Assembly (NCBI GenBank): GCA_002269645.1
Contig: NIVC01000247.1
Coordinates: forward strand, 1 to 64,000
Direction: 5' to 3'
Source of the DNA: Macrostomum lignano
Lineage: Eukaryota
Length of the DNA stretch: 64,000 nucleotides
Positions 24,290 to 49,900 of this stretch are shown here, piece after piece. The notes under the pieces were generated by a model. It had not been told where the DNA came from. It worked only from the letters and a program-made list of their open reading frames with translations, and made no database searches. Every line of letters starts with the position of its first letter. Positions within the stretch are counted from its first letter, which is position 1. The position numbers were made by a program, and so were the translations under genes.

Positions 24290-27200
24290 TCATTGGCAGT
24301 GTGGCCTGCAGTCAGCTGGTGCCGCAGTCCTCACTGACATGGCCGGAGACGCTGTGAATCTCAACTGACAAGCTGATGTCGTAGCAGCCCCAGCAGGTGC
24401 ACCAGCACCACCAGCTGCTGCAGCAGTCGATGTCGAAGAAGACGCTCCGTGCAGAAATGTCGGCGAATACGGCGGCGGCGGCATCAGGAAGATTGGCGAC
24501 GTCACTTCGCTGCCAGGTGACAGAGTGCTGGAGCAGACGGTCGGGCTGAACCTCTGCCAGCGTGGCGAGTCGCACAGGTGGCAGGGCCGCGACTCCTGCT
24601 GCTGCTGCAGGTGGCTTCGACTGCTCAGGCCTCCTCCAGTGAAGGCTGCGGCGAGGCACCTGGAGTTGAAAAGATAAAATCTGAAGGCTACGTACGGCGG
24701 CTGTTCAGTCCAAGGACTGGGGGGTCACCTCACACACCCTCAATTAGCCAAGCTAATGCTGGCACCCATTTTACAGCTGAGTGAACTGAAGCAATGCAGA
24801 GTTAAAGTGTGTCCTGCTCAAGGACACAAATTGTTCGGAGTTGGGTTGGGAATCGAACCCCCGATCTTCAAATCGGAAGTCTGACGCTCTAAACGTTAGG
24901 CTAAAACCCCATCTCCATAGTACTCGTAGACTCAATAGATACTTAAAAGTTTCGTTCCAGAATTAACTCTGAACAAATTTATGAATAGATTACGAGTATT
25001 TTTAGATTACGAGACAATTTATTCCACTAGAAGTGTCACCGAGATATGAAAAATTCACTCCTATTGTGGTGTCTGATATTTCTAAAGATTTCCCTCAAAA
25101 TTCCGCTTGATATTCCTCGAGAATTCCCTGAATATAATTCCCAGAATTCCCCTTAAGATTGCCCCTCTGATATTTCCCCAGAATTCACCTCCCCCCTAAG
25201 ATTCCTTCTCTGATATTTCTCGAGAATTCCCTTATGATTCTGTGTTGAATTCCTCCAGCATTCCCCATCAAAGCCGCACGCAGCTCACTCTGCACTGCTC
25301 ACCCGGGCGCCTGCTGCTGCAGCAGAGGTGTACTCGGGTACGACCTGCCCTGCTCCTGCGGCAGGTAGCAGCCACCGGCCGAAGCCGCAGTGAACGCAGC
25401 CGAAGCCGCCGCTAGCTGCTCCTCGTTATTCCGTCCACCGGTGCAGCTCCCCGACTTTGACGCCGAAGCCGCTGACGAACTTCGCCGAGAGCCGCCGTTG
25501 GCGTAGCGCCGTTTCAGACGCAGCGCGTAGCAGGCGGCGCAGAGCAGCAGCCCGAAGGAGGCGAAGCAGGCGACGCAGACGCCCAGGACGAGGCGACGCC
25601 ATGCCGGTCGGAGAAACTCGGCGAAGCTCATCTCGTTGTCGTCGGCAGATGGTTTCCGTGTCGTCTTAGGCGGCTCTGCTAGCTGCGGTGGCGGTGGCAG
25701 CCAGTTGAAGTTGTCGTCGCCTTCATTGTTGCGCTTTCTCAGCTGCGGGCGGTCCGCTTCCGAGCTGCCGTCAAACTTGACGCGCTCTCGAATCGGCAGC
25801 GGACGGACCTTCAACCTGACGCTTGCAGTCACCACTCCGGAGGCGTTCGCAGAGGAGAACCGGGAGCTGGGGCCTCGATGACTTCGCAGCAGGTCCGCAG
25901 AGCAGGTGTACAAGCCAGCCATCTCCTGGCGCACATCAGCCAGCTTCAGGCTGACCACATGGTAACTGTTGCGCTCGAAGAAATCCCTGAGAGACAGCTG
26001 GCGCCGATGCTGACGCCCGCCCGTCTCTGAGAAGCCGTCCAGACGGTCTTCGCTGCGGAGATGAAGGATGGATTTTGATGAATGAGCAGCTGAGGCAGAA
26101 CTTCCACTTTGACAATTTGAGGGCGCTTAAAAGGTAGATACTTTCAAAAAAGCACCGTTGTGGCGCCAAAAAGGGACTATTGGGGGGGGGCAAAAAGACA
26201 CTATGATGTGGCGCCAAAACGACACTATGATGTGGCGGCAAAAAGACACTATGATGTGGCGCCAAAACGACACTATGATGTGGCGCCAAAACGACACTAT
26301 GATGTGGCGCCAAAAAGACACTATGATGTCGCGCCAAAACGACACTGATGTGGCGCCAAAACGACACTATGATGTGGCGCCAAAACGACACTATGATGTG
26401 GCGCCAAAACGACACTATGATGTGGCGCCAAAACGACACTATGATGTGGCGCCAAAAAGACACTATGATGTGCCGCCAAAAAGATACTATAATGTGGTGC
26501 CAAAAAGACACTATGATGTGCCGCCAAAAAGATACTATAATGTGGTGCCAAAAAGACACTTTGATGTAGCGCCAAAAAGACACTATACTGTGGTGCCAAA
26601 AAGACTACGAGCGTATGATGTAGCGCCAAAAAGACACTATGATGTGGCGCCAAAGAAACTATATGATGTGGCGCCAAAAGATACTATTAAGCTATTATTA
26701 CTACTTTACAATGGCCAATCCGTTATCCACGCCAAGCGGTGACTCAGCGACAAAAATTTCTCTGCCAATTCAATCGTCATGTTTTTTCAAGTTATTCCGC
26801 AGCTGGCGTGATTGACGATGAAGGGGGGGGGTTGCTTTCGGCCAATCATTCACTGCCTAAGCTGCAGTCTGCAGTTGCTTTTTGCTTCAGCCGCTTTGAC
26901 ACAAAATCAATGATGCGCGCTTTTCTACAGAAAGAAGAAAAACCAACAACTTCTGATTGGAAATTGATGGGCTGAAAGAGCCGCGGCAAATTACTGATTT
27001 CCGACCGCGCTCTCCGCTTCGGGCTCTGCTTTAAAGGACTTTTTTTGTACGATTTTGGTTCTCCGCTGTCTCATATTAATTACACCTCATCTCACCTCTC
27101 TCCCTCTCTCTCCCTCTCTTCTTTTCCCACCCTCTAACCCTCCCTTCCATCCTCTCTCGCTCTCTCTCTCTCCATCCGTACCCTCTTTCATCCTCCCTGC

Positions 27201-33869: not shown

Positions 33870-34520
33870 CATCCCACAAACTTCCCAATCTACAAACTTC
33901 CCAATTCACAAACTTCCCAATCTACAAACTTCCCAATTCACAAGCTTCCCAACCCACAAGCTTTATAATCTACAAACCTTCCAATCCACAAATTTCCCAA
34001 TCTACAAACTTCCCAATTCACAAGCTTCCCAACCCACAAGCTTTATAATCTACAAACCTTCCAATCCACAAATTTCCCAATCCACAAACTTCACAATCCA
34101 CAAACTTCACAATCCATAAACTTCCCAATCCACAAATTTCCCAATCCACAAACTTCCCAATCCACAAACTTCCCAATCCACAAACTTCCCAATCCCCAAA
34201 ATTCCCAATCCATAAACTTCCCAATCCACAAACTTCACAATCCACAAACTTCCCAATCCACAAACTTCCCAATCCCCAAAAAACTTCTCAATCCAAAAAT
34301 TTCACAATCCACAAACTTCCCAATCCATAAACTTCCCAATCCACAAACTTCCCAATTCACAAACTTCCCAATCCACAAACTTCCCAATCCCCAAAATTCC
34401 CTATCCATAAACTTCCCAATCCACAAACTTCTTAATCTATAAACTTCCCAATCCACAAACTTCCCAATCCACAAACTTCCCAATCCACAAACTTCCCTAT
34501 CTACAAACTTCCCCAACTCA
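33870..34520. repeat. 16-bp minisatellite ATCCACAAACTTCCCA
   Basis: About 40 copies. Confidence 0.93.
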
Positions 34521-34766: not shown

Positions 34767-37700
34767 ATGGCTGATGAAAACCAATCGTTAAACACGCTGG
34801 ATTCAGCAATTCAGGTGACTTCGCTGCACAAAGGTTACGGCAGGCAGGCCGTAATTAGCGACCTGTCGCTTCAGGTGCCCTTGGGAAAAATGTAAGTAAA
34901 ATACCTTGGCTTAATTTCTGAGTTAAATGTTTAGGAATACCTCAACCAGTGTTGACGGTAAAAATGAATGTGGCCGCTTTTGGATTCGAACCCAGGCGCC
35001 GTAGGCGAGAGCCAGGCGCATTTTACCGCTGAGCTGCCCTGCCCCAAGTCGCAGACTCACAAATTGCTCTTCATCATTCGAATCTGTTTCAAAACCGCAT
35101 TATTAAATTGAGAAAGCCTTAGTGGAGTTTCATATTATAATCGTTCCAGCTACGGCCTGCTGGGTCCCAGCGGCTGCGGCAAGACCACGCTTCTCAAGTG
35201 CATCGTGGGCCGTCTGAGACCGGACTCGGGCCTCATCCGGGTCATGGGTCAGCGGCCAGGGAAGCTGGGCCACAAGGTGCCGGGCAGCCTCATCGGCTAC
35301 ATGCCGCAGGACCTGGCGCTGTACCAGGAGTTCACCATCTCCGAGACGCTGTTCTACTTTGGCAGAATCTTCGGCATGGACTCGGCCGAGATCAAAGCGA
35401 GGGTTGACTTTCTGGTAAATCTGCTCAAGCTGCCGTGCAAGGACAAGCTGATTTACCGACTCAGGTGAGGAATTGGGGAAGCAGTGATGCAACTCAGAAT
35501 CCGTGTCCAGCATTGAACTTCACGAGATTCACGTGGCGCAGCAACTCCATTTCAGCGGCGGTCAGCAGCGCAGAGTTTCGTTTGCTTGCGCCCTGCTGCA
35601 CGAGCCGCCTCTGCTGATCCTGGATGAGCCAACTGTGGGAGTGGACCCTCTGCTCAGGCAGTGGTGAGTGCCGGTCTGTGAGCATGGGTGAGGAGCCTCT
35701 GCTCAGGCAGTGGTGAGTGCCGGTCTGTGAGCATGGGTGAGGAGCCTCTGCTCAGGCAGTGGTGAGTGCCGGTCTGTGAGCATGGGTGAGGAGCCTCTGC
35801 TCAGGCAGTGGTGAGTGCCGGTGTGTGAGCATGGGTGAGGACCCTCTGCTCAGGCAGTGGTGAGTGCCGGTGTGTGAGCATGGGTGAGGACCCTCTGCTC
35901 AGGTAGTGGTGAGTGCCGGTTGTGAGCATGGGTGAGGAGCCTCTGCTCAGGCAGTGGTGAGTGTCGGTCTGTGAGCATGGGTGAGGAGCCTCTGCTCAGG
36001 CAGTGGTGAGTGCCGGTCTGTGAGCATGGGTGAGGAGCCTCTGGTCAGGCAGTGGTGAGTGCCGGTCCGTGAGTGGCTAGACCTTGCAAATCTTTAGTGG
36101 ATAGAATGCCTTCCATAAATTCAGTGCCTAAAAAATACCTACTTGTCTCTTCCTTAAAAATCGCCTTGCAGCATTTGGCATCATTTAAAAACTATGGTCA
36201 GCAATGCCCAGAAGCCCACATCAGTGGTCATCACAACGCACTACATTGAAGAGGCTCGCGAAGGCCACATGGTGGCGCTGATGCGAGATGGAAAACTTCT
36301 GGCAGAGTCGAGTCCAGAGAGTTTGCTCAGCTTCTACAATGAGACGGTAAGGTTCAATTACTTTTCAAAGTTTTCGGAAGCATCATGTTTCTGAAGCTGC
36401 ATCTACCTATCGCTGATACGCAGAGTCTCGAAGCCGTTTTCTTGAAGCTTTGCCATCGAGACAAATCGAAAGTGGCCGACGACAGCAGCCTTCCGAGCCT
36501 GGCAAATGTGGATGATGCGAAGCAGCCAATCGAAGCTGAAACTGAAGATGACAATGCGAAGAAGGAAACGCCAGATCCGGGATCTCAGTACTCACTGGAC
36601 TCAGTCAATTCACAGAAACAGAGCCAGCAGGCGCAGGAAGGTCAACCGGACGCGGTGAAATACGTCGAGCCCGTCTCGTTCTCTGAGTCACTGCGAGCTT
36701 TTGTGCAACCGCCGAGTGCTCGTAGAATTGGTGCTGTGGTGATCAAGGATGTCACCAACATGCGCAGACGCATCGGGTTCCTGCTGTTCGAGTTCAGCCT
36801 CCCAGTAGTGCAGATCGTGCTGTTCTGCCTGTGCATCGGGCGCGACCCTAACGGACTGCGACTGGCGATCGTCAACCAGGATGCCACTGGAGACCTCGGC
36901 AAGGATCTGGTGGCCTCACTCGATACTTACACAGTAAAAAAGGTCTGTAGGACTCCTTGTGAAAGTCAGAACATTTGCCGTATTTAAATTACCTGTTTTC
37001 TAACAGAAATCGTTTCTTTTGATTTACTGAACTTTCGAGCTCAAGAAGTTTCGAACTTGTAAAGTTGTCTTTGACGAAGTTTGAAAGGGCCTGCCAACTT
37101 AAGCTCGTAAAGTGGAGCCCGAGTAACCGATGTACAAAAAATGATACGTCATTCTGCTTACAAAGGCACTAGAAAGCTGGGTTTGGCAAAGTGACGAAAA
37201 TTGGGCTTGGGATAGGGGAAAACAAGCAAGGGGATTTAGAGACTCTACTTTTTGAGCTTAGGTTGACAATCCTTTTGAGCCTGTCAGCTCATAACTCATT
37301 TAATATTTTCAAAAATTTCTGAAACTTGAAACCTAATAAAAACTGCCTCAAGTAGTTTGAACTAAGCAGTAGGGGTTAGGTACTTCTAAAACAGTAAAAA
37401 TCACTCCATCAAGTAACAACTTCTCTGCAAATTTGCGCTCTCAACCTCCTCCCTCAGCTGCCGCATACTGACTTGGAGCAGGCGAAAGCTTTGGTGCAGC
37501 GAGCCGGAGCCTGGGGAGTGCTTTTCCTGGAGCCCAACTTTACTCAAAGCCTGACTAAACGGTTCACCAAGGCTGGCACTCTCAGCAACAGAAGCATCCG
37601 TCAGGGCAGCGTGCACATGTTTATGGACGATAGCAGCTACCAGGTTAGCGCGGTGCTCAAACAGTGCATACTAAGCGCCTTCGAGAAAGTCCTTGGCGAC

Positions 37701-39551
37701 GTTATGGAGAAGATGCAGCTGCACAGGAAGATGGCGCGAATCCCGATTGAGTATCATCCGCCACTGCTCGGATACGAGGATCCAACATTCACCGAGTTCA
37801 TGGCACCGGGCATCATCATCACCATTCTGTTCTTCTTGTCCACCGGACTCACAGCTGTCACCTTTGTTGTACAACGTAAAGAGGGCCTCCTCGATCGAAG
37901 TCTCGTGGCCGGAGTTACCTTCTTGGAGCTGATGCTGGGTCACGTGCTCACGGAGTTGATCATCATGTCTGGTACGAATTTCGCGCTATTCTACCGTATG
38001 CAAATCCAGCTGAAATGAAGTGGCTTTGTATTTCTAACTCAGCTCTACTCAATAGGCGCATCAAGTTTTACTATCTAGCCAAGCTTGCTTGTTAGAATTG
38101 CAAGGACCACAAACCCGTTTGCAGGTCAAACCGCACTGTTGCTGGTGCTGTCTCTTCTGGCATTCTCCATCAGGTGCAACGGCTCTGTGGCCTTGGTGAT
38201 CCTGCTGTCTCTGTGCTGCGGCTTCAGTGGCATGTCGCTGGGCCTCCTCATCTCCGTGCTGTGCACCGATGAGAACTCGGCGATGCAGGCCGCTCTGGGC
38301 ACCATGTACCCCTGCCTGTTGCTCAGCGGCATCATGTGGCCGACTGAGGCCATGCCCGTGGCGCTCTGGTACATGAGCAGGGCCTTGCCAACCACCCTGT
38401 TGGCTGAGTCTATGCGTTCGGTGATCAGCCGAGGTGAGTGAGACTACAGTGGGAGCAGAATACATTCTCACAATAATTTAGAGCTCTCTGTGCACCAAAA
38501 TTAGTCTGTGACTTGTCATTTTGTATCGTATATTTTCGTATCGTATTGTGTCGTGTCGTATCGTGTTGTGTCGTGTCGTTTCGTGTAGTGTCGTATCGTA
38601 TCGTGTTGTGTCGTGTCGTTTCGTGGTGTTTCGTGTCATGTTTTTTTCGTTTCGTGTCGTATCGTGTCGTGTCTTGTATTGTGTCGTGTCGTATCGTGTC
38701 GTGTCGTATCGTGTCGTGTCGTATCGTGTCGTGTCGTGTCGAATCGTGTTGTGTCGTATCATATCGTGACGTGTCATGTATTGTGTCGTGTTGTTTTGTG
38801 GTGTTTCGTGTCATGGTTTTTTGTGTCGTGTCGTATCGTGTCATGTATTGTGTCGTGTCGTATCGTATCGTGCCGTGTCGTTTCATTTGTATCGTGTCGT
38901 GTCGTATCGTGTTGTGTCGTGTCGTATCGTGTTGTGTCGTGTCGTTTCGTGGTGTTTCGTGTCATGGTTTTTTTCGTGTCGTGTCGTATCGTATCGTGTC
39001 ATGTATTGTGTCTTGTCGTATCGTGTCGTACCGTGTCGTTTCATTTGTATCGTGTCGTGCCGTGTCGTTTCATTTGTATCGTGTCGTACCGTGTCGTTTC
39101 ATTTGTATCGTGTCGTGCCGTGTCGTTTCATTTGTATCGTGTCGTGTCGGATCCTGTTGGGTCGTGTCGTATTCTGTTGTGTCGTGTCGTTTCGTGGTGT
39201 CTCGTGTCGTGGTTTTTTCGTGTCATGTCGTATTGTGTGGATTTCCGCGCTCAGGGGTCAGCGAAATTGACTGCTTAACCGTTTTTCTGGCTGCGCTGCG
39301 GTTGTCGACTGTCGCCAAATTGATTTGCGGGGAAGTCCAAACCACCGGTTAAAAATCTAAATGAAGAATGAGACTGATACCTGACACACCAAGCTTTATT
39401 TTTTGAGAATCGCGTCAAAAAACTTAAAAACTCGCACGCAGGCTTCGGCATGTCGGCAACATCCGTGTGGCTCGGGTTCGTGTCGGCTTCTGGCTGGTCC
39501 GTGTTCCTGCTGCTGGCGGCACTGCTGCTCATCAAGCTCAGAGGCATCTAG
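34767..39551 (+). CDS. ABCH: ABC half-transporter, ABCH-type (NBD-TMD), 724 aa, 8 exons
   Basis: Exons 34767-34891, 35150-35464, 35556-35663, 36172-36346, 36424-36942, 37458-37971, 38125-38433, 39442-39551 (2175 nt, in frame, all GT-AG). Walker [10 protein letters not shown]-loop [28 protein letters not shown], and a membrane domain with FTEFMAPG and [12 protein letters not shown]. Confidence 0.9.
34975..35043 (-). mobile_element. tRNA(Glu-CTC)-like pseudogene or SINE head in ABCH intron 1
   Basis: Minus strand GGCAGCTCAGCGGTAAAATG...CTCTCGC...GGGTTCGAATCC gives A/B boxes, but there is no paired acceptor stem. Confidence 0.5.
35647..36075 (+). repeat. 49-bp tandem repeat containing the exon 3 end and its 5' splice site (9 donor copies)
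   Basis: Unit CCTCTGCTCAGGCAGTG|GTGAGTGCCGGTCTGTGAGCATGGGTGAGGA(G/C). The first copy is the functional donor at 35663/35664. Confidence 0.93.
38520..39240. repeat. (TCGTG)n-type pentanucleotide array in the last ABCH intron
   Basis: GTGTC/GTATC units with higher-order blocks. The CRIV/VSYR ORFs are artefacts. Confidence 0.92.
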
Positions 39552-39819
39552 GTTGTGGCGACAAGATTGAAAAAATGATGGATTTATTTGATGAACCAAT
39601 TTTTGCTTTCCCTGAACGCTGATGGTTTGGCTATACTAAATGTATGTTCGCAAAATATCATATGCTAAATGTACAACGAACAATTACGGTACCTGTAGAT
39701 GCTCATGGTGAATGACAATTGTATGCCCTGGTTTCTTGGTACCTCTGTCAGCTCTACAACTTTGCAGAGACACCACTCAGCGAACCCCCTGTTTTTAGCT
39801 TGCCAACTGCTCTCTGCTA

Positions 39820-40000
39820 CTCACCACACTTTATCACTTAACCCACCACCCCACTCTCTGCCCCTCGCCACACTTTATCACTTAACCCACCACCCCACTC
39901 TCTGCCCCTCGCCACAGTTTATCACTTAACCCACCACCCCACTCTCTGCCCCTCGCCACAGTTTATCACTTAACCCACCACGCTACTCTCATCCCCTCAC
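39820..40000. repeat. ~44-bp tandem repeat between the two ABCH 3' ends
   Basis: TTTATCACTTAACCCACCACCCCACTCTCTGCCCCTCGCCACA, about 3.5 copies. Confidence 0.85.
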
Positions 40001-40747
40001 TACTTTATAGCTTTACAAATTTTCTAACTGGACATAACGAGCGGATAAGATAAATTCAAAATACCACCAGCTGCATCGCTATAAACCGCACCTGTACTCG
40101 TATGCATAATTTGGACGTTTTTTCTAAAATTTCAATGATTTTTGTAGAAAATTTTTGATAATTAAATTGATAAAAATTTAGCCAAGGAACAACCTAACTA
40201 ATGAACGAATAAAATTGAAATACGAACTTAATACCGCTATCAGTTATTCATATAAATGACTCGATTAAGGCTTAGTAGCAGGTAGAAACACTGCGCTATA
40301 ATTACGAGCTATTCGGAGCTTAATTAAGTTTAAACTCAGATCAATACGAGCTATTGTTGGTTGCTTTACTAGGTAGCTCGTAATCCATAGTCAGGAGTGT
40401 TTTTTAATTTTAAGTTTAACCACAGTTATAGTTTTCCAGAAGTAGGTAGCTATTATATGTACATAATAGTACATCCATACAGTCGCTTGTTACCATCGCA
40501 TTTAAAATTTATAAAGATAAGTACGAGTAGTTACGAATGTACAAGATAATGGATAAAAATCGTTTGAATACGCGCCAAAATAGCGTGACAAAAGCTGGAA
40601 TAACAAACGCCGGGTTCTGAAAAGGACACACCCCGTACATTGTGCGCTAAAAATACAGCAAATATTAACAATTGGTACAAGTGGTACAAGTTCTTCTCCA
40701 AGATCGGCTCAACAAGTCAGTCAGTCTGATTAGGATGGGACACTGCA

Positions 40748-43173
40748 TCAGACACCTCGAAGCTTGATGAGCAACAGCGACAACATCAGCAGCAGGACGG
40801 ACCAACCAGACGAGGACACGACTCCAGCCCACACGGATGTGGCTGTCATATCGAAGCCTTAAATATAGGGAATTAAAAAACGGAGAGATGGAAGTCAATT
40901 TCATAAATTCGCTTTGCCAAATAAAGCTAACGAGCTTAGTGAAAATGGTTTTTTTGCTATTGCGCGGCACATCTGAAGGCTGCGTACGGCTGTTCAGTCC
41001 AAGGACTGGGGGGTCGCCACACACCCTCAATTACCCCAGCTAATGCTGGTATATCTATTTAAGTGTCTTGCTTAGGGACACACAAATGATTCCGGGTGGG
41101 CTGAGACCTTTCAGTTGTAAGACCATCTAACCATGCTCTAACCACTTTGCTTAGACTTGGTGTAAAACAGCCCTGACTTTCCATTGTACAGCGCTGGGGT
41201 CTGTTTCTGTGATTCTGTGCTTCACAGCTAGCTCAGAATCAAACTCAGACAAGTGGAGCTATTTGAGGCGAGGGGACCCCTAGCTACACCCTTGAGCTCA
41301 GGTAATGTGGGTCGAGAGTGTACCGTAGTCAGTGCGTAAGTTTTGCCAGCGGTAATCAGCTATGATTATACAGGTATCGCTCAGTTTTTTTGTAAAGAGT
41401 TCCCGATGACGACTCACCTCGACTGATCACCGAGCGCATGGCCTCAGCAGACAGGGCAGTCGGCATCGCCCTGCTGATGTACCAGAGCGCGGTGGGCATG
41501 GCTTCGATTGGCCACATGATGCCGCTGAGCAGCAGGCATGGGTACATGGTGCCCAGAGCCGCCTGCATCGCTGCATTCTCATCAGTACACAGCACGGAGA
41601 TGAACAGGCCCAACGACATGCCGCAGAAGCCGGTGCTCATGGTCAGCAGGACCACCACTGCTGGTGAGCCATGGCAGGGAATCGCGAAGACGGCCAGACA
41701 GACAACCAGGAGAAGGCCGGCTTGAACTGCGGTTGAAGGATGACATTAAGATTCAGAACTTTCTTTCGATTCCCTCATCTTGTCAAAGGTTTTAAAAGTT
41801 TGTCAGTCTAATTAATACAGGGGCTGAAAGTTGATCTTTTTCAGTATCAACGCGACTTCTTGATCTGCCAAGAGGGATCTGTTGACTCAAAATGACTCAA
41901 AATTTTCTACAAGAACGAATGCTCGAATGGACGAACGCTGGCTAAGAATAATACGAATCGTAATAAAAAATTACCGAAGAGTTGCGGAATGTCAGATTTA
42001 TCCACATAAATTGACAATAACTATCATTTCTTACTAATTTATCCCTGTAATTTGCGTTTTGTGACCCCTAATTGGGCCGTTTAGTTCGAGTGATTTGTAC
42101 AGTATAATAGTTTCACGATCGATAATTTAGGCCACGCGCACAAAGAGATCCAGTTATTATGACCTTTAAATATAACCTGCCTCGCCTCGATTTAATAACT
42201 TTCTCTCACCTTTCTCTCTCTCTCTCTTACCGGCGACTTTTACAACCGCATGCTTTTAAATTTAGCTTTCCGTCTTCGGTATTTGTCCTACTAAGCAATT
42301 GGACACGGTCACCCTGCAGCAACGACTTCAACGACATCGCCCAACAATCACTTGTGACGGCAATTCTGCCCATTCCCCTGACTCCTGAGCAACATACAAG
42401 CTCGCCAATACTGTACACAGGCACAGCACTCGTACACACGCTCACACAGGTGTACATTATAGCCCTGACTCTGTGCTTTTGTAGGTTGGTTTTGAGAAAC
42501 ACGGGATAGCAAGTACTTTTGAAGGGCAAAAAATCTCGCTATTATGAAGAGCTAAGCGTCATCCCTTACCAGACATTACGACCAGCTGCGTGAGAATATG
42601 GCCCAGCATCAGCTCCGCGATAGTGACTCCAGCCACCAGACTCCGGTCAAGGAGGCCGTGCCGGCGCTCCGAAACAAAGGTGACAGCTGTGAGTCCGGTG
42701 GACAGGAAGAACAGGATGGTGATGATCATGCCCGGTGCCATGAACTCGGTGAATGTCGGGTCCTTGCTGCCCAGAAGAGGCGGTTTGTACTCGACGGGCA
42801 GACTGGCCAGAACACGCGGCTGACCTTGCTTCTCTAGCAGGTCGCCAATGAAGTCCTGCAGGTGCTTGGCGATGGTCTTTTGCAACACGGCGCTGACTTG
42901 ATAGTTGGTGTCGTCCATCTCCAGGTGCAGGCTGCCCTGGCGCAGGGTCTCGTTGCTGAGCCCCACCGGATTGATGAGGCGCTGGGTGAGGCTGCTTGAA
43001 AAATTCTTTCTAAAGTGCAGCACCGACCAGGCATTGGCGCTAAGAACCTCGGCTCTGGCCTGCTGCAGATCCGGGAAGATCACCTGGTGGAGGGAAGAGA
43101 TGACCGACATTAACCAACTAACAAACTAACAAGATAACTAACTGACTAACTAATTAACTAACTAACTAACTTG

Positions 43174-43223
<50 letters not shown>

Positions 43224-43254
43224 TGCTAACTAACTAACTAACTAACTAACTAAC

Positions 43255-43315
<61 letters not shown>

Positions 43316-43338
43316 GACTAACTAACTAACTAACTTGA

Positions 43339-43426
<88 letters not shown>

Positions 43427-43606
43427 CAACTAACTAACTAACGAACTAACTAAATAAATAACTAACTAACTAACTACCAAACTAACTAACTAACTAAATA
43501 ACTAACTTGCTAACTTACTAACTACCTAATTAATTAACTAACTAACTAGCTAACTAACTAACTAACTAACTGACTAACTAACTAACTAATTAACTAACTA
43601 ACTAAT

Positions 43607-43640
<34 letters not shown>

Positions 43641-43765
43641 CCTAGCTAACTAACTAACTAACTTACTAACTACCTAATTAATTAACTAACTAACTAGCTA
43701 ACTAACTAACTAACTAACTGACTAACTAACTAACTAATTAACTAACTAACTAACTAACTACCTAG

Positions 43766-43851
<86 letters not shown>

Positions 43852-43874
43852 GACTAACTAACTAACTAACTTGA

Positions 43875-43958
<84 letters not shown>

Positions 43959-44138
43959 CAACTAACTAACTAACGAACTAACTAAATAAATAACTAACTA
44001 ACTAACTACCAAACTAACTAACTAACTAAATAACTAACTTGCTAACTTACTAACTACCTAATTAATTAACTAACTAACTAGCTAACTAACTAACTAACTA
44101 ACTGACTAACTAACTAACTAATTAACTAACTAACTAAT

Positions 44139-44172
<34 letters not shown>

Positions 44173-44297
44173 CCTAGCTAACTAACTAACTAACTTACTA
44201 ACTACCTAATTAATTAACTAACTAACTAGCTAACTAACTAACTAACTAACTGACTAACTAACTAACTAATTAACTAACTAACTAACTAACTACCTAG

Positions 44298-44372
<75 letters not shown>

Positions 44373-44377
44373 CCTAG

Positions 44378-44438
<61 letters not shown>

Positions 44439-44458
44439 CAACTAACCAACTAACTAAA

Positions 44459-44508
<50 letters not shown>

Positions 44509-44884
44509 CCAAACTAACTAACTAAATAACTAACTTGCTAACTTACTAACTACCTAATTAATTAACTAACTAACTAGCTAACTAACTAACTAACTAACTG
44601 ACTAACTAACTAACTAACTAACTTATCAGCGGCTAAAAGTGGGGATCGAACCATGCGGGGCAGACTGAGACCGGTTTCGGGCTTTTTTGCCCTCGTCAGT
44701 CAGTCATAGCCACACGAGGTCGGCTCCACCTCTAGCCAGCTGAGTGGAACTGCTATTTATGCGCCCTTGCACATGGCGACATTTTCTAGTCCACCATGTG
44801 AGGAATTCGCGCCATGCTCGAATAGCTTTACTATCAGTAAGCTATCGCTTACATAACTAACTAACTAACTAACTAACTACCTAG

Positions 44885-44941
<57 letters not shown>

Positions 44942-46955
44942 CAACTAACTAACTAACTAACTAACCAACTAACTAAATAACTAACTAACTAACTAACTAA
45001 CTACCTAACTAACTAACTAACTAACTAACTAACTTGCTAACTTACTAACTAACTAACTAACTTGCTAACTTACCAACTACCTAATTAACTAACTAACTAT
45101 CCAATTAGCTACCTTTCCCAGTTTTTTTCCGTCCAGTGATTCGATGAACTCCCTGCTGTAGTTTCCGCTAACATCGTCATTAACGATGGCCAGCCGCAGG
45201 TCCCTGGGCTCCGGACCAACGCATAAGCAGAACAGGACGATCTGCAGCACCGGCAAGCTGAACTGGAACAGCAGAAAGCCAATCCGCCTGATCATGTTGG
45301 TGAAATCCTTCAGGACCACCGCGCCGATACGTCGAGGTTTCGGTAGAGACCGAAACGACTCCAGTGACGATGCAGAATCTCTTATAAGCTCGGGCGTGCG
45401 ATTGGAGCTTTTTATCTCAACTGCAGACGTCATTTCAATGCTTATCGAAGCCAAATCCACATCGTTCCCATTGGCATCTGTGTTCAGCTTCACAACACAA
45501 TTGTCTGCAGGTTCAAGCTGCTGTTCCCTGCCGCTGCGACTGGCTTGACAGCAGAGCTTCAGAAACACGGACTCAAGACTCTGGAAAGTTCATGCAACTC
45601 TGATTAGTCAAATGGATTATTTCAATAATCTTTCGGTAAAATCAATCACACGTACTGTCTCTCCAAATTCGTTGAGCAGAGTTTGGGGACTCGACTCTGC
45701 CAGAAGCTTGCCGTCTCGCATCAGCGCCACCATATGGCCTTCGCGAGCCTCCTCAATGTAGTGCGTTGTGATGACCACTGATGTGGGCTTCTGGGCGTTG
45801 CTCACCAGGGAGTTTAAGTGATTCCAGATGCTGAAGTAGTTAATTTTAAAAAGGCTTCTTATTGCGTTGAGTTGATTTTGAGGTCGAATAAGCAACGCAC
45901 TCACACACCGGTACTCACCACTGCCTGAGCAGAGGCTCCTCACCCATGCTCACACACCGGCACTCACCACTGCCTGAGCAGAGGCTCCTCACCCATGCTC
46001 ACACACCGGCACTCACCACTGCCTGAGCAGAGGCTCCTCACCCATGCTCACACACCGGCACTCACCACTGCCTGAGCAGAGGCTCCTCACCCATGCTCAC
46101 ACACCGGCACTCACCACTGCCTTCACTGCCTTCACTGAGGGTCTTCACCCATGCTCACAGACCGGCACTCACCACTGCCTGAGCAGAGGGTCCACTCCCA
46201 CAGTTGGCTCATCTAGGATCAGCAGAGGCGGCTCGTGCAGCAGGGCGCAAGCGAACGAAACTCTGCGCTGCTGACCGCCGCTGAAATGGAGTTGCTGCGC
46301 CACGTGAATCTCGTGAAGGTTCAATGCTGGACACGGATTCTGAGCTGCATCACTGCTTCCCCAATTCCTCACCTGAGTCGGTAAATCAGCTTGTCCTTGC
46401 ACGGCAGCTTGAGCAGATTTACCAGAAAGTCAACCCTCGCTTTGATCTCAGCCGAGTCCATGCCGAAGATTCTGCCAAAGTAGAACAGCGTCTCGGAGAT
46501 GGTGAACTCCTGGTACAGCGCCAGGTCCTGCGGCATGTAGCCGATGAGGCTGCCCGGCACCTTGTGGCCCAGCTTCCCTGGCCGCTGACCCATGACCCGG
46601 ATGAGGCCCGAGTCCGGTCTCAGACGGCCCACGATGCACTTGAGAAGCGTGGTCTTGCCGCAGCCGCTGGGACCCAGCAGGCCGTAGCTGGACATGAGGG
46701 TTCATGGAGGTGTGCAACGAATAATCTCTTTTCTGCTCTTACCAAATATGTGCACTGACGAAGACCACCAAGGACCAGCGCAAGTCGCTAAAACCTTCAT
46801 GTAACTATTAGCACTTGGAATAGCACTTACATGTGTCCTTTCTGCACTTGGAGTGTCAGGTCCCGGATAACCGATCCACGAGCTTGGCTATAGCCTTTCC
46901 ATAGCGAGCGAACCTCGATAGAATAATCGCTGCCGTTAGCTGCATCAGTAGCCAT
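40748..46955 (-). CDS. ABCH: ABC half-transporter, ABCH-type paralogue, 707 aa, 8 exons
   Basis: Exons 46955-46831, 46687-46373, 46280-46173, 45830-45656, 45580-45113, 43083-42570, 41726-41418, 40857-40748 (2124 nt, in frame). Seven of eight exon lengths equal those of the plus copy. Starts [15 protein letters not shown], ends LLIKLRGV*. Confidence 0.9.
40973..41150 (-). mobile_element. Second, internally deleted copy of the CORE-like SINE
   Basis: CTGAAGGCTGCGTACGGCTGTTCAGTCCAAGGACTGGGGGG...CACACCCTCAATTA...GCTAATGCTGG matches 24681-24770. Confidence 0.75.
44623..44853 (-). mobile_element. ~230-bp SINE/retrozyme-like insert with Pol III-like boxes flanking a hammerhead ribozyme
   Basis: Unique sequence flanked on both sides by (GTTA)n. 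Minus strand: CCACTCAGCTGGCTAGAG (degenerate A box/D arm), then the ribozyme, then GGTTCGATCCCC (B box). Confidence 0.6.
44663..44705 (-). ncRNA. Minimal type I hammerhead ribozyme
   Basis: Minus strand GACUGA-CUGACGA-GGGC-AAAAAA-GCCC-GAAA-CCGG-UC^UCAGUC. It has a perfect 6-bp stem I, the full CUGANGA/GAAA/UH core, a 4-bp stem II and a palindromic ACCGGU stem III. Predicted cleavage is between 44669 and 44668. Confidence 0.88.
45897..46190 (-). repeat. 49-bp splice-donor tandem repeat in the minus ABCH gene (about 6 donor copies, one unit rearranged)
   Basis: Reverse complement of the 35647-36075 unit. The functional donor is at 46173/46172. Confidence 0.92.
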
Positions 46956-49900
46956 GGTGTTGACTGACATCGGCTGTTGTGTCTGTCTTTAGTCACCTAA
47001 TTAATTGCTTCAAGAACGGCAGTGTCCGATTGGTAAGACCTGATCAATCGAGCTGCACGAATTATTCAAATTTGTTTCCTTTAAATAGCCGCAAATTGAC
47101 GGCAGATGCGTCACAAAATGAGTTCGGGTGGAGGCTACCAAAACTATTTGCAGCATTGAGAAGTGGTTCGTGCGCAGATCGATTTGAAAGCGCATGCATA
47201 ATCAGTAGGTGCAAATAGAAGACACGGAAAGGCTCGCGGTTTCGAGTTGCAGTACGAATTGCGCAGTAAACTTAATTTCTATCGACTAGCTATTCATACA
47301 GGTGCAAAACCAGGTGCATTGACCAGGTGCAAAAGTAGAGATTATATAATTGTAAGAAAGAATCAAGCTATAACTCATTAATTTAGAATTTGGCATTTTG
47401 CTTTACGAGATCTAATTATCCTGCTCTTATGACGCTTCTTATGACGCAACTTGGACTCACCTGCGAGACCAGTATGAAGTTCAAGCGCAGAGCCACATCA
47501 ACTGAAACTTTCTGTAAAAACTGCACCAAAGTGTCTGCGCACCTGACTAAATTTAGATAATTTAGTTACTCCTGTAGAAAATCTACCACAAATTAGTAGC
47601 ATAGAATCCTATAGGAAATATGCTAAAAATTAGGACTTGTATTGTTCTAAATTTTATAAACTGTAGAGCTCACTACTGTAGACCTAATTTTATTTAGAAA
47701 ATATTTGCACAAATATTTCACCCATGAATGACTGGGGAAATGACCCAGGATATTTAAACATCAATTGCGATCACAAACTAAATATCAAAAACATATTCGT
47801 GTGAAGATTATAAAATCCAAATGTAGTTTCATTGCCAAAATTATACTTTACGAGCTAATAAGGAAAGCAGAAGTTTTCGTTATATTCAAGGGGAAAACTA
47901 GCAACAACTGGAAGGAATTTGTTTTTAAAGTTACAAAATATACATGGGGAAATGGGGAAATAAAATGACCCCTATCATCACCAAATATGTACATGATTGT
48001 GACAGGTGTTTGATCAAATACTTCGTGCTTGCATTGAGAAAGTCGATTTTCAATCTATATTAATGCTCATGTATGAATTAAATAAGGATTAAGGAGGCAT
48101 AAATTCTCTAAAAAACATGTGGAACACCCGAGCGAGTGAGAGCTGAAAAAAATACTAATTTGCGCTGTTTGTGAGATGAAATCAGCTGCTTTTCTTTGTG
48201 ACCCTGCAAGGTACAAATGTAGCGGTTTTGACGTTTCCTAATGTATTGGGTTTTTCCTACATTTTTAAGGTCTAAGCGTTCATAGCTGATATGCGTAAAC
48301 ATGTAAACAGGTGTGTAACGGATTCCGATCTATTATCAAGGACTACTAAAGTAGAAGGACGCAACACTCGAAATCTATATACTCGTAAAATGTTTTGAAG
48401 GCCACTTTTCCAAACATCACTTTTGAATGGATGCACTTGGAAATGTCTTCTTCGATGGGACCTTCGAAGTTTATTCCGCTTTAAGATAAAATAGCATCCG
48501 GGGCTTTGGCTTAACTTAAGTTCCTTTTATTTTCCATTTCTTAAGGCAACCCATTTTTTCGACAAGGTATGCATGCCTTACTATCTCAAATTAGTTACGT
48601 GCCTTCAACTTTATTCCTAACTCTTCGAAGGGTTCGATTTAGCCGTGTTGAATCTGTAAACAGTATAAAAAAATTTTAATTGCAAAGCGTTAGTATCCAG
48701 CAAAGTATTTATTTAAAGTGGCCTTCAAAACTTTTTCCTTTGAAACTTGAGTGTCGCATACTGTATATAACGTTGATTTAGTTGACTGACTAAGCAAGGA
48801 AATAAACAAGTTCACATGGGTCCTGTGTTGAGGAGCAGAGGAGTGTTCGGCGGTGAACTTGTCTGACTCTCTGAACCCCGGTTTGATTCCTTCCTAGCAG
48901 GAAACTTGACCCTGGGGTTGTCGTGCGGTTGACATGGCGATGAGGGTCTATACCAACCTAGCCCCGGAGCCCGGACGGACTTCATCAGAAATGTACACAC
49001 GTATACACTCTCTGCGCCTACGGTAGAGACAAACCTAATTGAGCTACTGGTGAGATATTCTGCACCCCCATATACTACTGACAAAGTACTCCTCACTATC
49101 GAATATGTTCTTTTCTCCCATCAGACTCAAATAACTCGTAAATAAATACTTTCAACAGTATAGGAATACTAAACCATTTTTCCGCCCGTCGGGTTACCAA
49201 GGGAGATGAAGTAAGGAATGAAGTGGGGGGAGCGGTGTGCGAGGGTTGGACGGATTAAAGCTACCCCGATCAGTTCTCTCGTATCTTTTACTTCATAATA
49301 GTCCATGAGGAACTGCTCACTGGCGCATAGAGTGGCGACTTTTCAGTGTTTCTGAGTATATTTGCGCGGCGCCAAACACGAAGAAACGCAGGCACACGTA
49401 ATGTGTTGCGCACCTTCTCGAACAAGAATCAAGTCGCCTGGCCACCGGAAAGTCGAAATATTCAACGATTTTGCAAGGCTTTTTTGCCGACCAAGGCGCT
49501 AGTGTACACAATACACCCCTGTGCGTCAATCAGCACTGCGTCTCAGTGCAGCTTTGCCACGCCTCCAAATTTCATCATGACTTCATTGGTCACTGGCCAT
49601 CACCCAGGCGGAGCTTCTGGACCTTCAACAGGTGGCACCAGGTGACTATGAACACCCTGTTGCGCATTTCTCCAGTTTCGCTACCAAACTTCAACAGTGG
49701 GCAAACCTACGCTCGAAACTGATGGACATCCACAGCCAGTCTCTCAAGCATTCCGTCATCACCCCGACGCCATCGACACCTTCAACAGGTGGCACCAGGT
49801 GACTATGAACACCCTGTTGGGAATTTCGAGGTGATGAGTGATGACGAAAAATCTCACTAATAGTCTACTGTTTATATACTTAAAACAAAAAAGCAATAAA

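Follow-up and report, generated by a model that had tools for sequence, protein, structure and literature searches.

How two genes that are strongly diverged over most of their length come to share one almost identical block is the question raised by a pair of ABC transporter paralogues of the flatworm Macrostomum lignano. The window analysed here, a stretch of 64,000 nucleotides of contig NIVC01000247.1 of the M. lignano assembly Mlig_3_7, contains two convergent 8-exon genes for ABCH-type half transporters, A and B:

34767..39551, forward strand: gene A, ABCH-type half transporter of 724 aa, annotated
34767-34891, 35150-35464, 35556-35663, 36172-36346, 36424-36942, 37458-37971, 38125-38433, 39442-39551, forward strand: exons of gene A, hand-built model
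40748..46970, reverse strand: gene B, convergent paralogue of A, 712 aa, unannotated and intact
46831-46970, 46373-46687, 46173-46280, 45656-45830, 45113-45580, 42570-43083, 41418-41726, 40748-40857, reverse strand: exons of gene B, hand-built model

The exon models were built by hand and then verified by translation, with both spliced genes giving stop-free translations, every intron running from GT to AG, and the model of A being 100% identical to P0001 and PAA87118.1 (P0191). The genes lie tail to tail, with their stop codons ~1.2 kb apart. By sequence comparison the whole proteins are 67% identical, with dS ~1.1, and A and B are old tandem duplicates. Pfam places ABC_tran at residues 31-173 of A, followed by ABC2_membrane_3 at 359-717, with an identical domain order in B. 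Gene B is absent from public annotation, which has no gene call there at any of the three assembled loci described below, and a protein database search with B returned gene A as the nearest match (67%), with neither an annotated B nor any orthologue from other Macrostomum species among the matches. B is intact in all three copies, with pN/pS between them of 0.11-0.22. Introns that looked tRNA-like by eye gave no calls with ARAGORN and Rfam.

A repeat search of the window recovers inverted arms at 35145-35518 and 46319-46692 (374 nt, 99%) and a second pair at 35518-35712 and 46124-46318 (96%), with additional arms traversing a 49-bp tandem array to reach 36075 and 45898. The core of the shared tract is composed as follows:

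35145..35663, forward strand: tract core in A, from the final 5 nt of intron 1 through exon 2 and the 91-nt intron 2 to the end of exon 3
46173..46692, reverse strand: tract core in B, from the final 5 nt of intron 1 through exon 2 and the 92-nt intron 2 to the end of exon 3

Across 515 aligned columns, 5 substitutions and 1 indel separate the two cores (99% identical). Exon 2 carries a single difference in 315 nt, C/T at 35387 (TCGGCCGAG/TCGGCTGAG), and exon 3 carries two in 108 nt, G/A at 35622 (ATCCTGGAT/ATCCTAGAT) and T/C at 35583, with intron 2 differing by a substitution at 35492 and by the 1-nt indel that separates its 91 and 92 nt forms. Identity begins at TCCAG (35145), 5 nt ahead of exon 2, and ends with the 49-bp minisatellite of intron 3, with blastn-short detecting no similarity between A and B in intron 1 or in the tail of intron 3 past the array. 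Aligned identity outside the tract is ~75–80% for exons 1 and 5-8 and ~88% for exon 4; global-alignment identities of the long diverged introns were disregarded as gap-inflated. The tract corresponds to residues 42-183 of A, from Walker A to the D-loop and thus most of the ABC_tran domain, with exon 1 and the H-loop exon lying outside it. It is a segment of DNA rather than a set of exons, with intron 2 and 20 nt from the start of intron 3 inside it.

The first-pass annotation of this stretch had placed the near-identity at 35146-36075 and 45897-46691, within 1 nt of the limits found here, and had noted both an abrupt onset at the exon 2 acceptor TCCAG, borne out by the dissimilarity of intron 1 in blastn-short, and strong divergence of exon 1, exons 5-8 and the other introns, which is seen here as 75–80% identity in those exons and as introns 1 and 3 that are unalignable beyond the tract. 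Its description of the block as almost identical is accurate for the core and fails for the repeat part, in which the donor-bearing units number 9 in A and 6 in B, a 58-nt variant being among those of B. Likewise, the few differences it listed (35387, 35622, one intronic substitution and one indel) are all recovered, with 35583 having been omitted, and its heading, which confines the block to the ATPase exons, is refined in that the tract also takes in intron 2 and the start of intron 3, both of which lie in the interval it gave.

The contrast between tract and remainder is most pronounced at silent sites, with a dS of 0.028 and a dN of 0 between A and B in exons 2 and 3, against a dS of ~1.1 and a dN of 0.34–0.36 in exons 1 and 5-8; the uniform dS across exons that would speak against a conversion tract is therefore not what is found. 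A further paralogue, C, for which a manual splice model exactly matches P0002, served as control. In exons 2 and 3, dS to C is 1.27 from A and from B alike, with C differing at 66/108 synonymous sites, and silent sites in these exons are thus free to change. Synonymous constraint does not explain the tract, given this dS to C and the homogenisation of intron 2 as well, and protein-level selection is insufficient since silent sites and introns are homogenised too. Uninterrupted identity in the coding alignment extends for up to 239 nt, compared with a maximum of 50 in 10,000 shuffles (P < 1e-4), and the run of identical third codon positions is 79 compared with a permutation maximum of 28; chance is excluded as its cause. 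Neighbour-joining trees of the three subgenome copies of A and B together with C recover A and B as each monophyletic with bootstraps of 100% for exon 4 and 100% for exons 1 and 5-8, but 0% for exons 2 and 3, such that the tract and the remaining exons give completely discordant trees. The first-pass proposal of ectopic conversion between inverted copies is well supported by the dS contrast, the homogenised intron 2, the C control and the discordant trees, and we regard non-allelic gene conversion between A and B as highly probable.

The base composition of the tract is compatible with GC-biased conversion, and the fit may be read in that way, with GC3 of 0.81–0.82 in A and B versus 0.68 in C (Fisher P = 0.013), and 0.69–0.70 versus 0.67 outside the tract. 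The excess is modest, exon 7 being just as GC-rich.

All DNA compared here derives from a single assembly of a single inbred line, in which the locus is present in three assembled copies: the window itself (L003), a copy ~97% identical to it (L004) and one ~93–95% identical (L002). This number agrees with the three subgenomes described for the Mlig_3_7 assembly (PMC10733133). Both genes are present in unchanged orientation at all three loci, and in each the tract runs from the same acceptor to the end of the array. Within loci, A and B differ by 5, 10 and 14 substitutions in the 515-column core, and between loci the distances are 14–17 for A-A and 5–6 for B-B. The A-B divergence of the tract in the other two loci, 1.9–2.8%, is no greater than that between subgenomes, for which pS across the A and B genes is 2.8–5.5%. 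Independent protein models based on the ML2 assembly reproduce A of the window (P0001) and an L004-type variant of A (P0194, R to Q).

Finer variation within the tract points to more than one exchange between A and B, which is probable given the variants common to A and B inside one locus. Two synonymous transversions, at 35186 (L004) and 35435 (L003), are common only to A and B of a single locus, where 0.04 such coincidences are expected (P ~8e-4). The four-gamete test is failed by 8/15 pairs of informative sites, and private substitutions are distributed unequally, with 2, 7 and 9 in the A copies versus 1, 1 and 1 in the B copies (P = 0.003). In the tract, A of L003 lies 5–6 substitutions from the B copies and 14–15 from the other A copies, and at the intron 2 sites 35501 and 35517 it has the B state where the other A copies differ; at 35387 the states of A and B in L003 are swapped relative to the other loci. 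This placement of A among B sequences suggests a possible transfer from B to A at the window locus. Support for particular pairings in the tract is poor, with bootstraps of 48% for A of L003 with B of L002, 39% for A of L003 with B of L003, and 28% for A of L004 with B of L004. An exon-only tree paired A with B locus by locus, a grouping that is not adopted here, having lost useful support once intron 2 was added. Tracts with identical boundaries in all three loci, together with variants shared within loci, do not sit with one recent event; the tract had first been described as recent.

The 3′ part of the tract is formed by the minisatellite:

35636..36075, forward strand: 49-bp minisatellite in A, 3′ part of the tract (TRF: period 49, 9.0 copies, 96% matches)
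45898..46200, reverse strand: 49-bp minisatellite in B, with 6 donor copies and one unit a 58-nt variant

Each unit joins the 3′ end of exon 3 to the opening 20 nt of intron 3, giving 9 GGTGAGT donors in A, and the similarity of A and B stops ~22 nt into the final partial unit. The array is present in 6/6 gene copies, the functional exon 3 donor splice site being repeated 4–9 times, with donor-unit numbers for A/B of 9/6, 6/4 and 4/5 per locus. Unit types are shared by A and B within loci, all units of A and B in L004 being G-type, and A and B in L003 both having a C-type first unit. It is possible that this unstable repeat is where conversion initiates or ends. The fuller proposal, to which we give little credence, is that it may be a break-prone element at which tracts start or end, or alternatively a set of decoy donors regulating productive splicing, the latter suggested because each downstream donor adds an in-frame TGA directly behind exon 3. 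If the break-prone version were true, exons 2 and 3 would be a self-renewing conversion island.

A second, less similar block lies in exon 4, which is conserved between A and B in its middle and diverged at its edges:

36205..36318, forward strand: middle of exon 4 in A, H-loop region, intermediate similarity to B
45684..45797, reverse strand: middle of exon 4 in B, counterpart of A 36205..36318

Here A and B differ at 7/38 third positions, compared with 252/508 in exons 1 and 5-8 (binomial P = 2e-4, before correction for windows), whilst A and C differ at 20/38. The intermediate state of this region, already remarked upon from the sequence, is thus reproduced both in the ~88% identity of exon 4 and in its third positions. 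The A-B differences are almost unchanged across the three loci, and the block is probably an older, separate conversion tract.

A single conversion shortly before the subgenomes split, followed by mutation at unequal rates, with the variants shared by A and B attributed to recurrent mutation or polishing noise, would account for much of the pattern in the main tract: its boundaries are identical in 3/3 loci, A-B distances of 5–14 in the tract are comparable to the 5–17 seen between subgenomes, and bootstrap support for locus-wise pairing is weak. We nonetheless consider this history unlikely, with the two transversions restricted to A and B of the same locus, the unit types shared within L004 and L003, the four-gamete incompatibilities and the unequal branch lengths all pointing away from it. 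Polishing bears on the same evidence: mapping to multiple loci is reported for 93% of read pairs (PMC10733133), and any short-read polishing of the assembly could have moved single variants among the six near-identical tracts. Such transfer would weaken the fine-scale evidence of recurrence, namely the distances and shared variants, and would leave the existence of the tract unaffected. The stronger form of this concern, in which reads of paralogues or subgenomes were mixed during assembly or polishing and the near-identity of exons 2 and 3 is a consensus error, draws on the neopolyploid genome, whose three copies are ~98% alike, and on the same multi-mapping of read pairs (PMC10733133). It appears very unlikely, with a tract of less than 1 kb lying between unique flanks on contigs of 0.2–1.1 Mb, recurring in three separately assembled loci, and retaining private differences and distinct repeat numbers in each A/B pair. 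Moreover, cross-mapping requires high identity to begin with, the adjacent exons being just 75–80% identical, and the ML2-based proteins match two variants of A. The worry of assembly collapse is in our reading weakened, yet not removed. A palindrome from a missed PacBio adapter was ruled out, the arms being strongly diverged outside the tract.

Two further explanations dispense with exchange between A and B. Both genes might have been overwritten by a third, unseen paralogue, and with B itself unannotated, more unannotated ABCH copies are conceivable. However, C was the one further M. lignano relative found, and it is distant from the tract sequence and shows no 49-bp array, with no paralogue lying within 10 kb of it; A and B are the only copies inside the window, and the variants shared within loci favour local exchange, leaving this explanation highly improbable. 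Selection on the nucleotide sequence itself, whether from extreme codon bias or because exons 2 and 3 contain a functional RNA or DNA element, could be invoked for a region of high GC3 in which the best-conserved ATPase motifs are encoded. It is scarcely credible in view of the synonymous divergence of C in the same exons and the homogenisation of both intron 2 and the intronic array, and the region has no match to an Rfam family.

Ectopic conversion between A and B involved copying of a 0.8–0.95 kb segment, from the exon 2 acceptor to the end of the minisatellite, with a break in one copy presumably repaired by homologous recombination without crossover, using the inverted paralogue ~10 kb away as the presumed template. 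The tract would have been laid down before or around the separation of the three subgenome copies and exchanged again thereafter, with A at the window locus being the copy homogenised last and hence placed among the B sequences. The outcome is an identical catalytic core in the two proteins, comprising Walker A, the Q-loop, the signature motif, Walker B and the D-loop, joined to an N-terminus, linker, extracellular loop and membrane helices that remain far apart.

On this account the locus offers a clean, datable case, from a neopolyploid animal, of ectopic gene conversion. Around the time of the genome duplication or later, the short block encoding the ATPase core became homogenised between two old paralogues, and the substrate-facing parts stayed apart. 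Trees or orthology calls for A and B based on the NBD will be wrong, short reads and RNA-seq from exons 2 and 3 are unassignable to A or B, and the tract is best avoided in the design of RNAi, in situ probes and CRISPR guides for either gene. The conceptual gain over existing knowledge of conversion between inverted duplicates is little.

Amongst described transporters, A and B resemble ABCH proteins (Drosophila CG9990 and snustorr, fish Abch1) in being half transporters in which the NBD precedes an ABC-2 type membrane domain, and by Pfam both have this reverse topology of one NBD, then one membrane domain. ABCH has been described from arthropods and teleost fish (PMC3724490), whereas the host here is a flatworm. 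CG9990, snustorr, Tigriopus ABCH and fish ABCH1 are among the database matches at 42–47% identity over 97–100% of length, and many of these matches carry the automatic name ‘ABC transporter G family member 20/23’. Conversion in ABCH genes, or between M. lignano paralogues, was not reported in the literature searched; the conversion of A and B is a new example of a known, ordinary process. In Drosophila hsp70Aa/Ab and in Y-chromosome palindromes, conversion between inverted repeats keeps the copies near-identical and the spacer uninverted, with the whole unit homogenised. A and B share with these systems intrachromosomal conversion between inverted copies, and differ in that a short internal block is homogenised in genes otherwise strongly diverged. 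A parallel in gene structure is provided by human RHD and RHCE, multi-exon paralogues for membrane proteins that lie with facing 3′ ends ~30 kb apart, and for which segmental gene conversions have been inferred that blur the distinction between orthology and paralogy (PMC4824203). A and B are likewise multi-exon membrane-protein paralogues with facing 3′ ends and segmental conversion, but their 3′ ends are 1.2 kb apart, they are much older (dS ~1.1), they carry one tract of 0.8–0.95 kb and a probable older tract in exon 4, and their three subgenome copies permit relative dating.

The convergent ABCH-type paralogues A and B have ~1.2 kb separating their two stop codons, with no internal stops in either spliced model and GT..AG at every intron, and are the sole copies in the 64-kb window by tblastn. 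The window is 100% identical to NIVC01000247.1 (GCA_002269645.1, Mlig_3_7). In window coordinates, unless a locus is named, the features are:

34767-39551, + strand: gene A, 8 exons, 724 aa
40748-46970, - strand: gene B, 8 exons, 712 aa, exon plan as in A
35636-36075 (A) and 45898-46200 (B): 49-bp minisatellite, the 3' part of the near-identical A/B tract
36205-36318, + strand: middle of exon 4 of A, H-loop
20010-21758, + strand: 582-aa ORF, weakly matching the Mab-21 C-terminal domain
24842-24910, - strand: weak tRNA match, 32 bits
50110-50844, - strand: intronless ribosomal protein S6e ORF
L002 15753-22178 and L004 16090-20662: unannotated gene B in the two other subgenome copies of the locus

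Pfam places ABC_tran at residues 31-173 of A, N-terminal to ABC2_membrane_3 at 359-717, the predicted order being that of a reverse-topology half transporter. The ABCH label of the first-pass annotation appears reasonable, as the closest named full-length relatives (42–47% identity) include ABCH members, among them Drosophila CG9990, snustorr, Tigriopus ABCH, and fish ABCH1. ABCH has been described from arthropods and teleost fish (PMC3724490); protein searches also returned relatives with 43–48% full-length identity from molluscs, annelids, nemerteans, echinoderms, and hemichordates, and a partial rotifer relative (40–41% identity across ~87% of the query). Gene A is 100% identical to Macrostomum lignano proteins (UniRef A0A1I8JBE7; PAA87118.1, BOX15_Mlig025227g1). 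For gene B the protein database holds no counterpart closer than gene A (67%), and a gene call at its position is absent from all three copies of the locus; B, intact in all three (pN/pS 0.11–0.22), is probably a gene missed by public annotation.

The inverted repeat reported in the first-pass annotation is real, with limits within 1 nt of those proposed. Identity does start abruptly at TCCAG, 5 bases 5' of exon 2, and segment alignment likewise bears out the small number of differences, with 1 in 315 nt of exon 2, 2 in 108 nt of exon 3, and one substitution and one indel in intron 2 (91 vs 92 nt). Outside the tract the divergence is as described, with exons 1 and 5-8 at 75–80% identity and no detectable A-B similarity in intron 1 or the intron 3 tail. 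Synonymous divergence is far from uniform: by Nei-Gojobori, exons 2+3 have dS = 0.028 and dN = 0, and exons 1 and 5-8 have dS of ~1.1–1.2 and dN of 0.34–0.36. The longest identical run is 239 nt, whereas shuffling the differences 10,000 times never gave a run above 50 nt; at third positions the longest run is 79, compared with a maximum of 28 after shuffling.

As a control, the locus of C, a third M. lignano paralogue 57% identical to both A and B, was fetched, with our exon model reproducing its protein (P0002) exactly. Silent sites in exons 2+3 are free to change, since dS to C is 1.27 for A and B alike, and constraint on protein or codons as the cause of the A/B identity is excluded because intron 2 is homogenised too. 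Gene C (L001 10001-28074) has the A/B exon plan, except that exons 6 and 7 are fused, with an intron 1 of 11.6 kb and a different, 14-bp minisatellite starting ~45 nt 3' of the exon 3 donor, near the site of the A/B array.

Two further copies of the locus, L004 (~97% identity with the window) and L002 (~93–95%), were reached via gene A cluster members on contigs of the same assembly, each holding A and B in the same convergent layout as the window's locus, L003. This matches a published analysis in which ~85% of Mlig_3_7 lies in three paralogous 'subgenome' copies, their SNP divergence being 2.2% overall but 1.1% within coding sequence (PMC10733133). Each of the six gene copies is intact, with pS of 2.8–5.5% and pN/pS of 0.07–0.22 between subgenomes indicating purifying selection on both A and B. 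The tract has the same limits in all three loci, from the exon 2 acceptor to the end of the 49-bp array, and therefore predates, or roughly coincides with, the separation of the copies. Simple assembly collapse is an unlikely source of such a tract, which is shorter than long reads, has unique flanks on large contigs, and is present in three separately assembled loci, each copy carrying its own private differences and repeat number; furthermore, proteins of an independent ML2-based annotation match the window's A and an L004-type variant. Divergence of the arms outside the tract rules out a PacBio palindrome artefact. Elsewhere the subgenome copies are mosaic, with B exon 6 almost equal in L004 and L002, B exons 7-8 equal in L003 and L004, A exon 4 equal in L003 and L002, and A exon 6 almost equal in L003 and L004, suggesting recombination or conversion between subgenomes too.

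The history of exchange within the tract was followed in a 515-column core of exon 2, intron 2, and exon 3.

Substitution counts, 515-column core
A vs B, same locus: L003 (window) 5; L004 10; L002 14
A vs A, different loci: 14–17
B vs B, different loci: 5–6

Each A copy resembles the B copies more closely than it does the remaining A copies, and the window's A resembles them most. In NJ trees of the six copies rooted with C, exon 4 recovers A and B each as monophyletic in 100% of bootstraps, as do exons 1 and 5-8, compared with 0% for exons 2+3. Two synonymous transversions, at 35186 (L004) and 35435 (L003), are each exclusive to A and B of one locus (~0.04 such coincidences expected, P ~8e-4), and minisatellite unit types are likewise common to A and B within loci. 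Additionally, 8 of 15 informative-site pairs fail the four-gamete test, private substitutions number 2, 7, and 9 in the A copies and 1, 1, and 1 in the B copies (P = 0.003), and at the two intron 2 sites where A of L004 and L002 is unlike all B, the window's A carries the B state. One conversion shortly before the copies split, with unequal rates thereafter, accounts for much of this pattern; bootstrap values for particular A/B pairings within the tract are weak (28–48%), and, as short reads map ambiguously, single variants might have been shuffled among copies if the assembly was short-read polished. Taken together, the distances, trees, shared variants and units, four-gamete failures, unequal private counts, and intron 2 states favour more than one exchange, the most recent in the window's locus and probably from B to A, a reading that we consider rather likely. 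The tract is probably not the outcome of one recent event.

Ectopic conversion between the inverted copies, as originally proposed, accounts for the contrasts in dS and monophyly and for the homogenised intron. On the reading with most support, a break in one gene would have been repaired by homologous recombination using the inverted paralogue ~10 kb away as template, with resolution without crossover. Had a crossover taken place within the tract, the 10 kb in between would be inverted, with promoter and exon 1 swapped between gene bodies; no such product is seen in the three loci, A-type exon 1 staying with A-type exons 4-8 in each. Once set up, a perfectly matching block between unalignable introns would be expected to undergo further conversion within the same limits. 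GC3 in the tract is 0.81–0.82 in A/B, whereas the corresponding codons of C give 0.68 (Fisher P = 0.013); outside it the values are 0.69–0.70 and 0.67 (P = 0.48). Introns 2 and 3 are also the most GC-rich introns, a pattern consistent with, though only suggestive of, GC-biased gene conversion.

The 49-bp unit joins ~29 nt from the end of exon 3 to the opening 20 nt of intron 3, and thus reiterates the functional donor GGTGAGT, 4–9 times across the six genes (A 9, 6, 4; B 6, 4, 5; in the window, 9 in A and 6 in B). A/B similarity ends ~22 nt into the final partial unit, where gene-specific intron starts. This unstable array may plausibly have been an initiation or termination site of conversion. 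Read-through from exon 3 gives TGG TGA, so that any downstream donor would add an in-frame stop.

Mid-exon 4, described previously as intermediate, is so: exon 4 is ~88% identical overall, and at 36205-36318 A and B differ at 7/38 third positions, compared with 252/508 in the background (binomial P = 2e-4, uncorrected for ~20 windows) and 20/38 between A and C. This segment is set apart from the main tract by the unalignable intron 3 tail and by 30 diverged nt at the exon 4 start. The A-B differences here are almost the same in the three loci, indicating a probable older event, since decayed. In P0194, the ML2-based L004-type protein model, exon 3 is spliced to another acceptor, 30 nt into exon 4, so that 10 residues at the start of exon 4 (window 36172-36201) are skipped, and this acceptor coincides with the change from the diverged exon 4 start to the A/B-similar middle.

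Intron 5 of B (window 43111-45099) is 2029 nt long, against 487 nt in L004, and is longer in L002 (2298 nt). It contains two (TAAC)n blocks, together ~1.75 kb, that flank a 230-bp unique insert, which ends in a tRNA-like GGTTCGATCCCC motif. Part of A intron 1 (34960-35045) resembles a reversed tRNA-derived fragment (GGATTCGAACCC...), possibly a SINE remnant, with ARAGORN and Rfam making no call on it. A 16-bp satellite of 40 copies (33874-34513) stops ~250 bp 5' of the A start codon, and a (TCGTG)n array of ~700 bp (38536-39231) occupies much of A intron 7.

In this model flatworm the case is of practical use when genes are annotated, reads mapped, and reagents designed. We found no literature report of conversion in ABCH genes or between M. 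lignano paralogues, and the tract is a new, well-documented example of an already known process. Its closest analogue is the human RHD/RHCE pair, membrane-protein paralogues whose 3' ends face each other, as in A and B, and between which segments are inferred to have been exchanged by gene conversion (PMC4824203).
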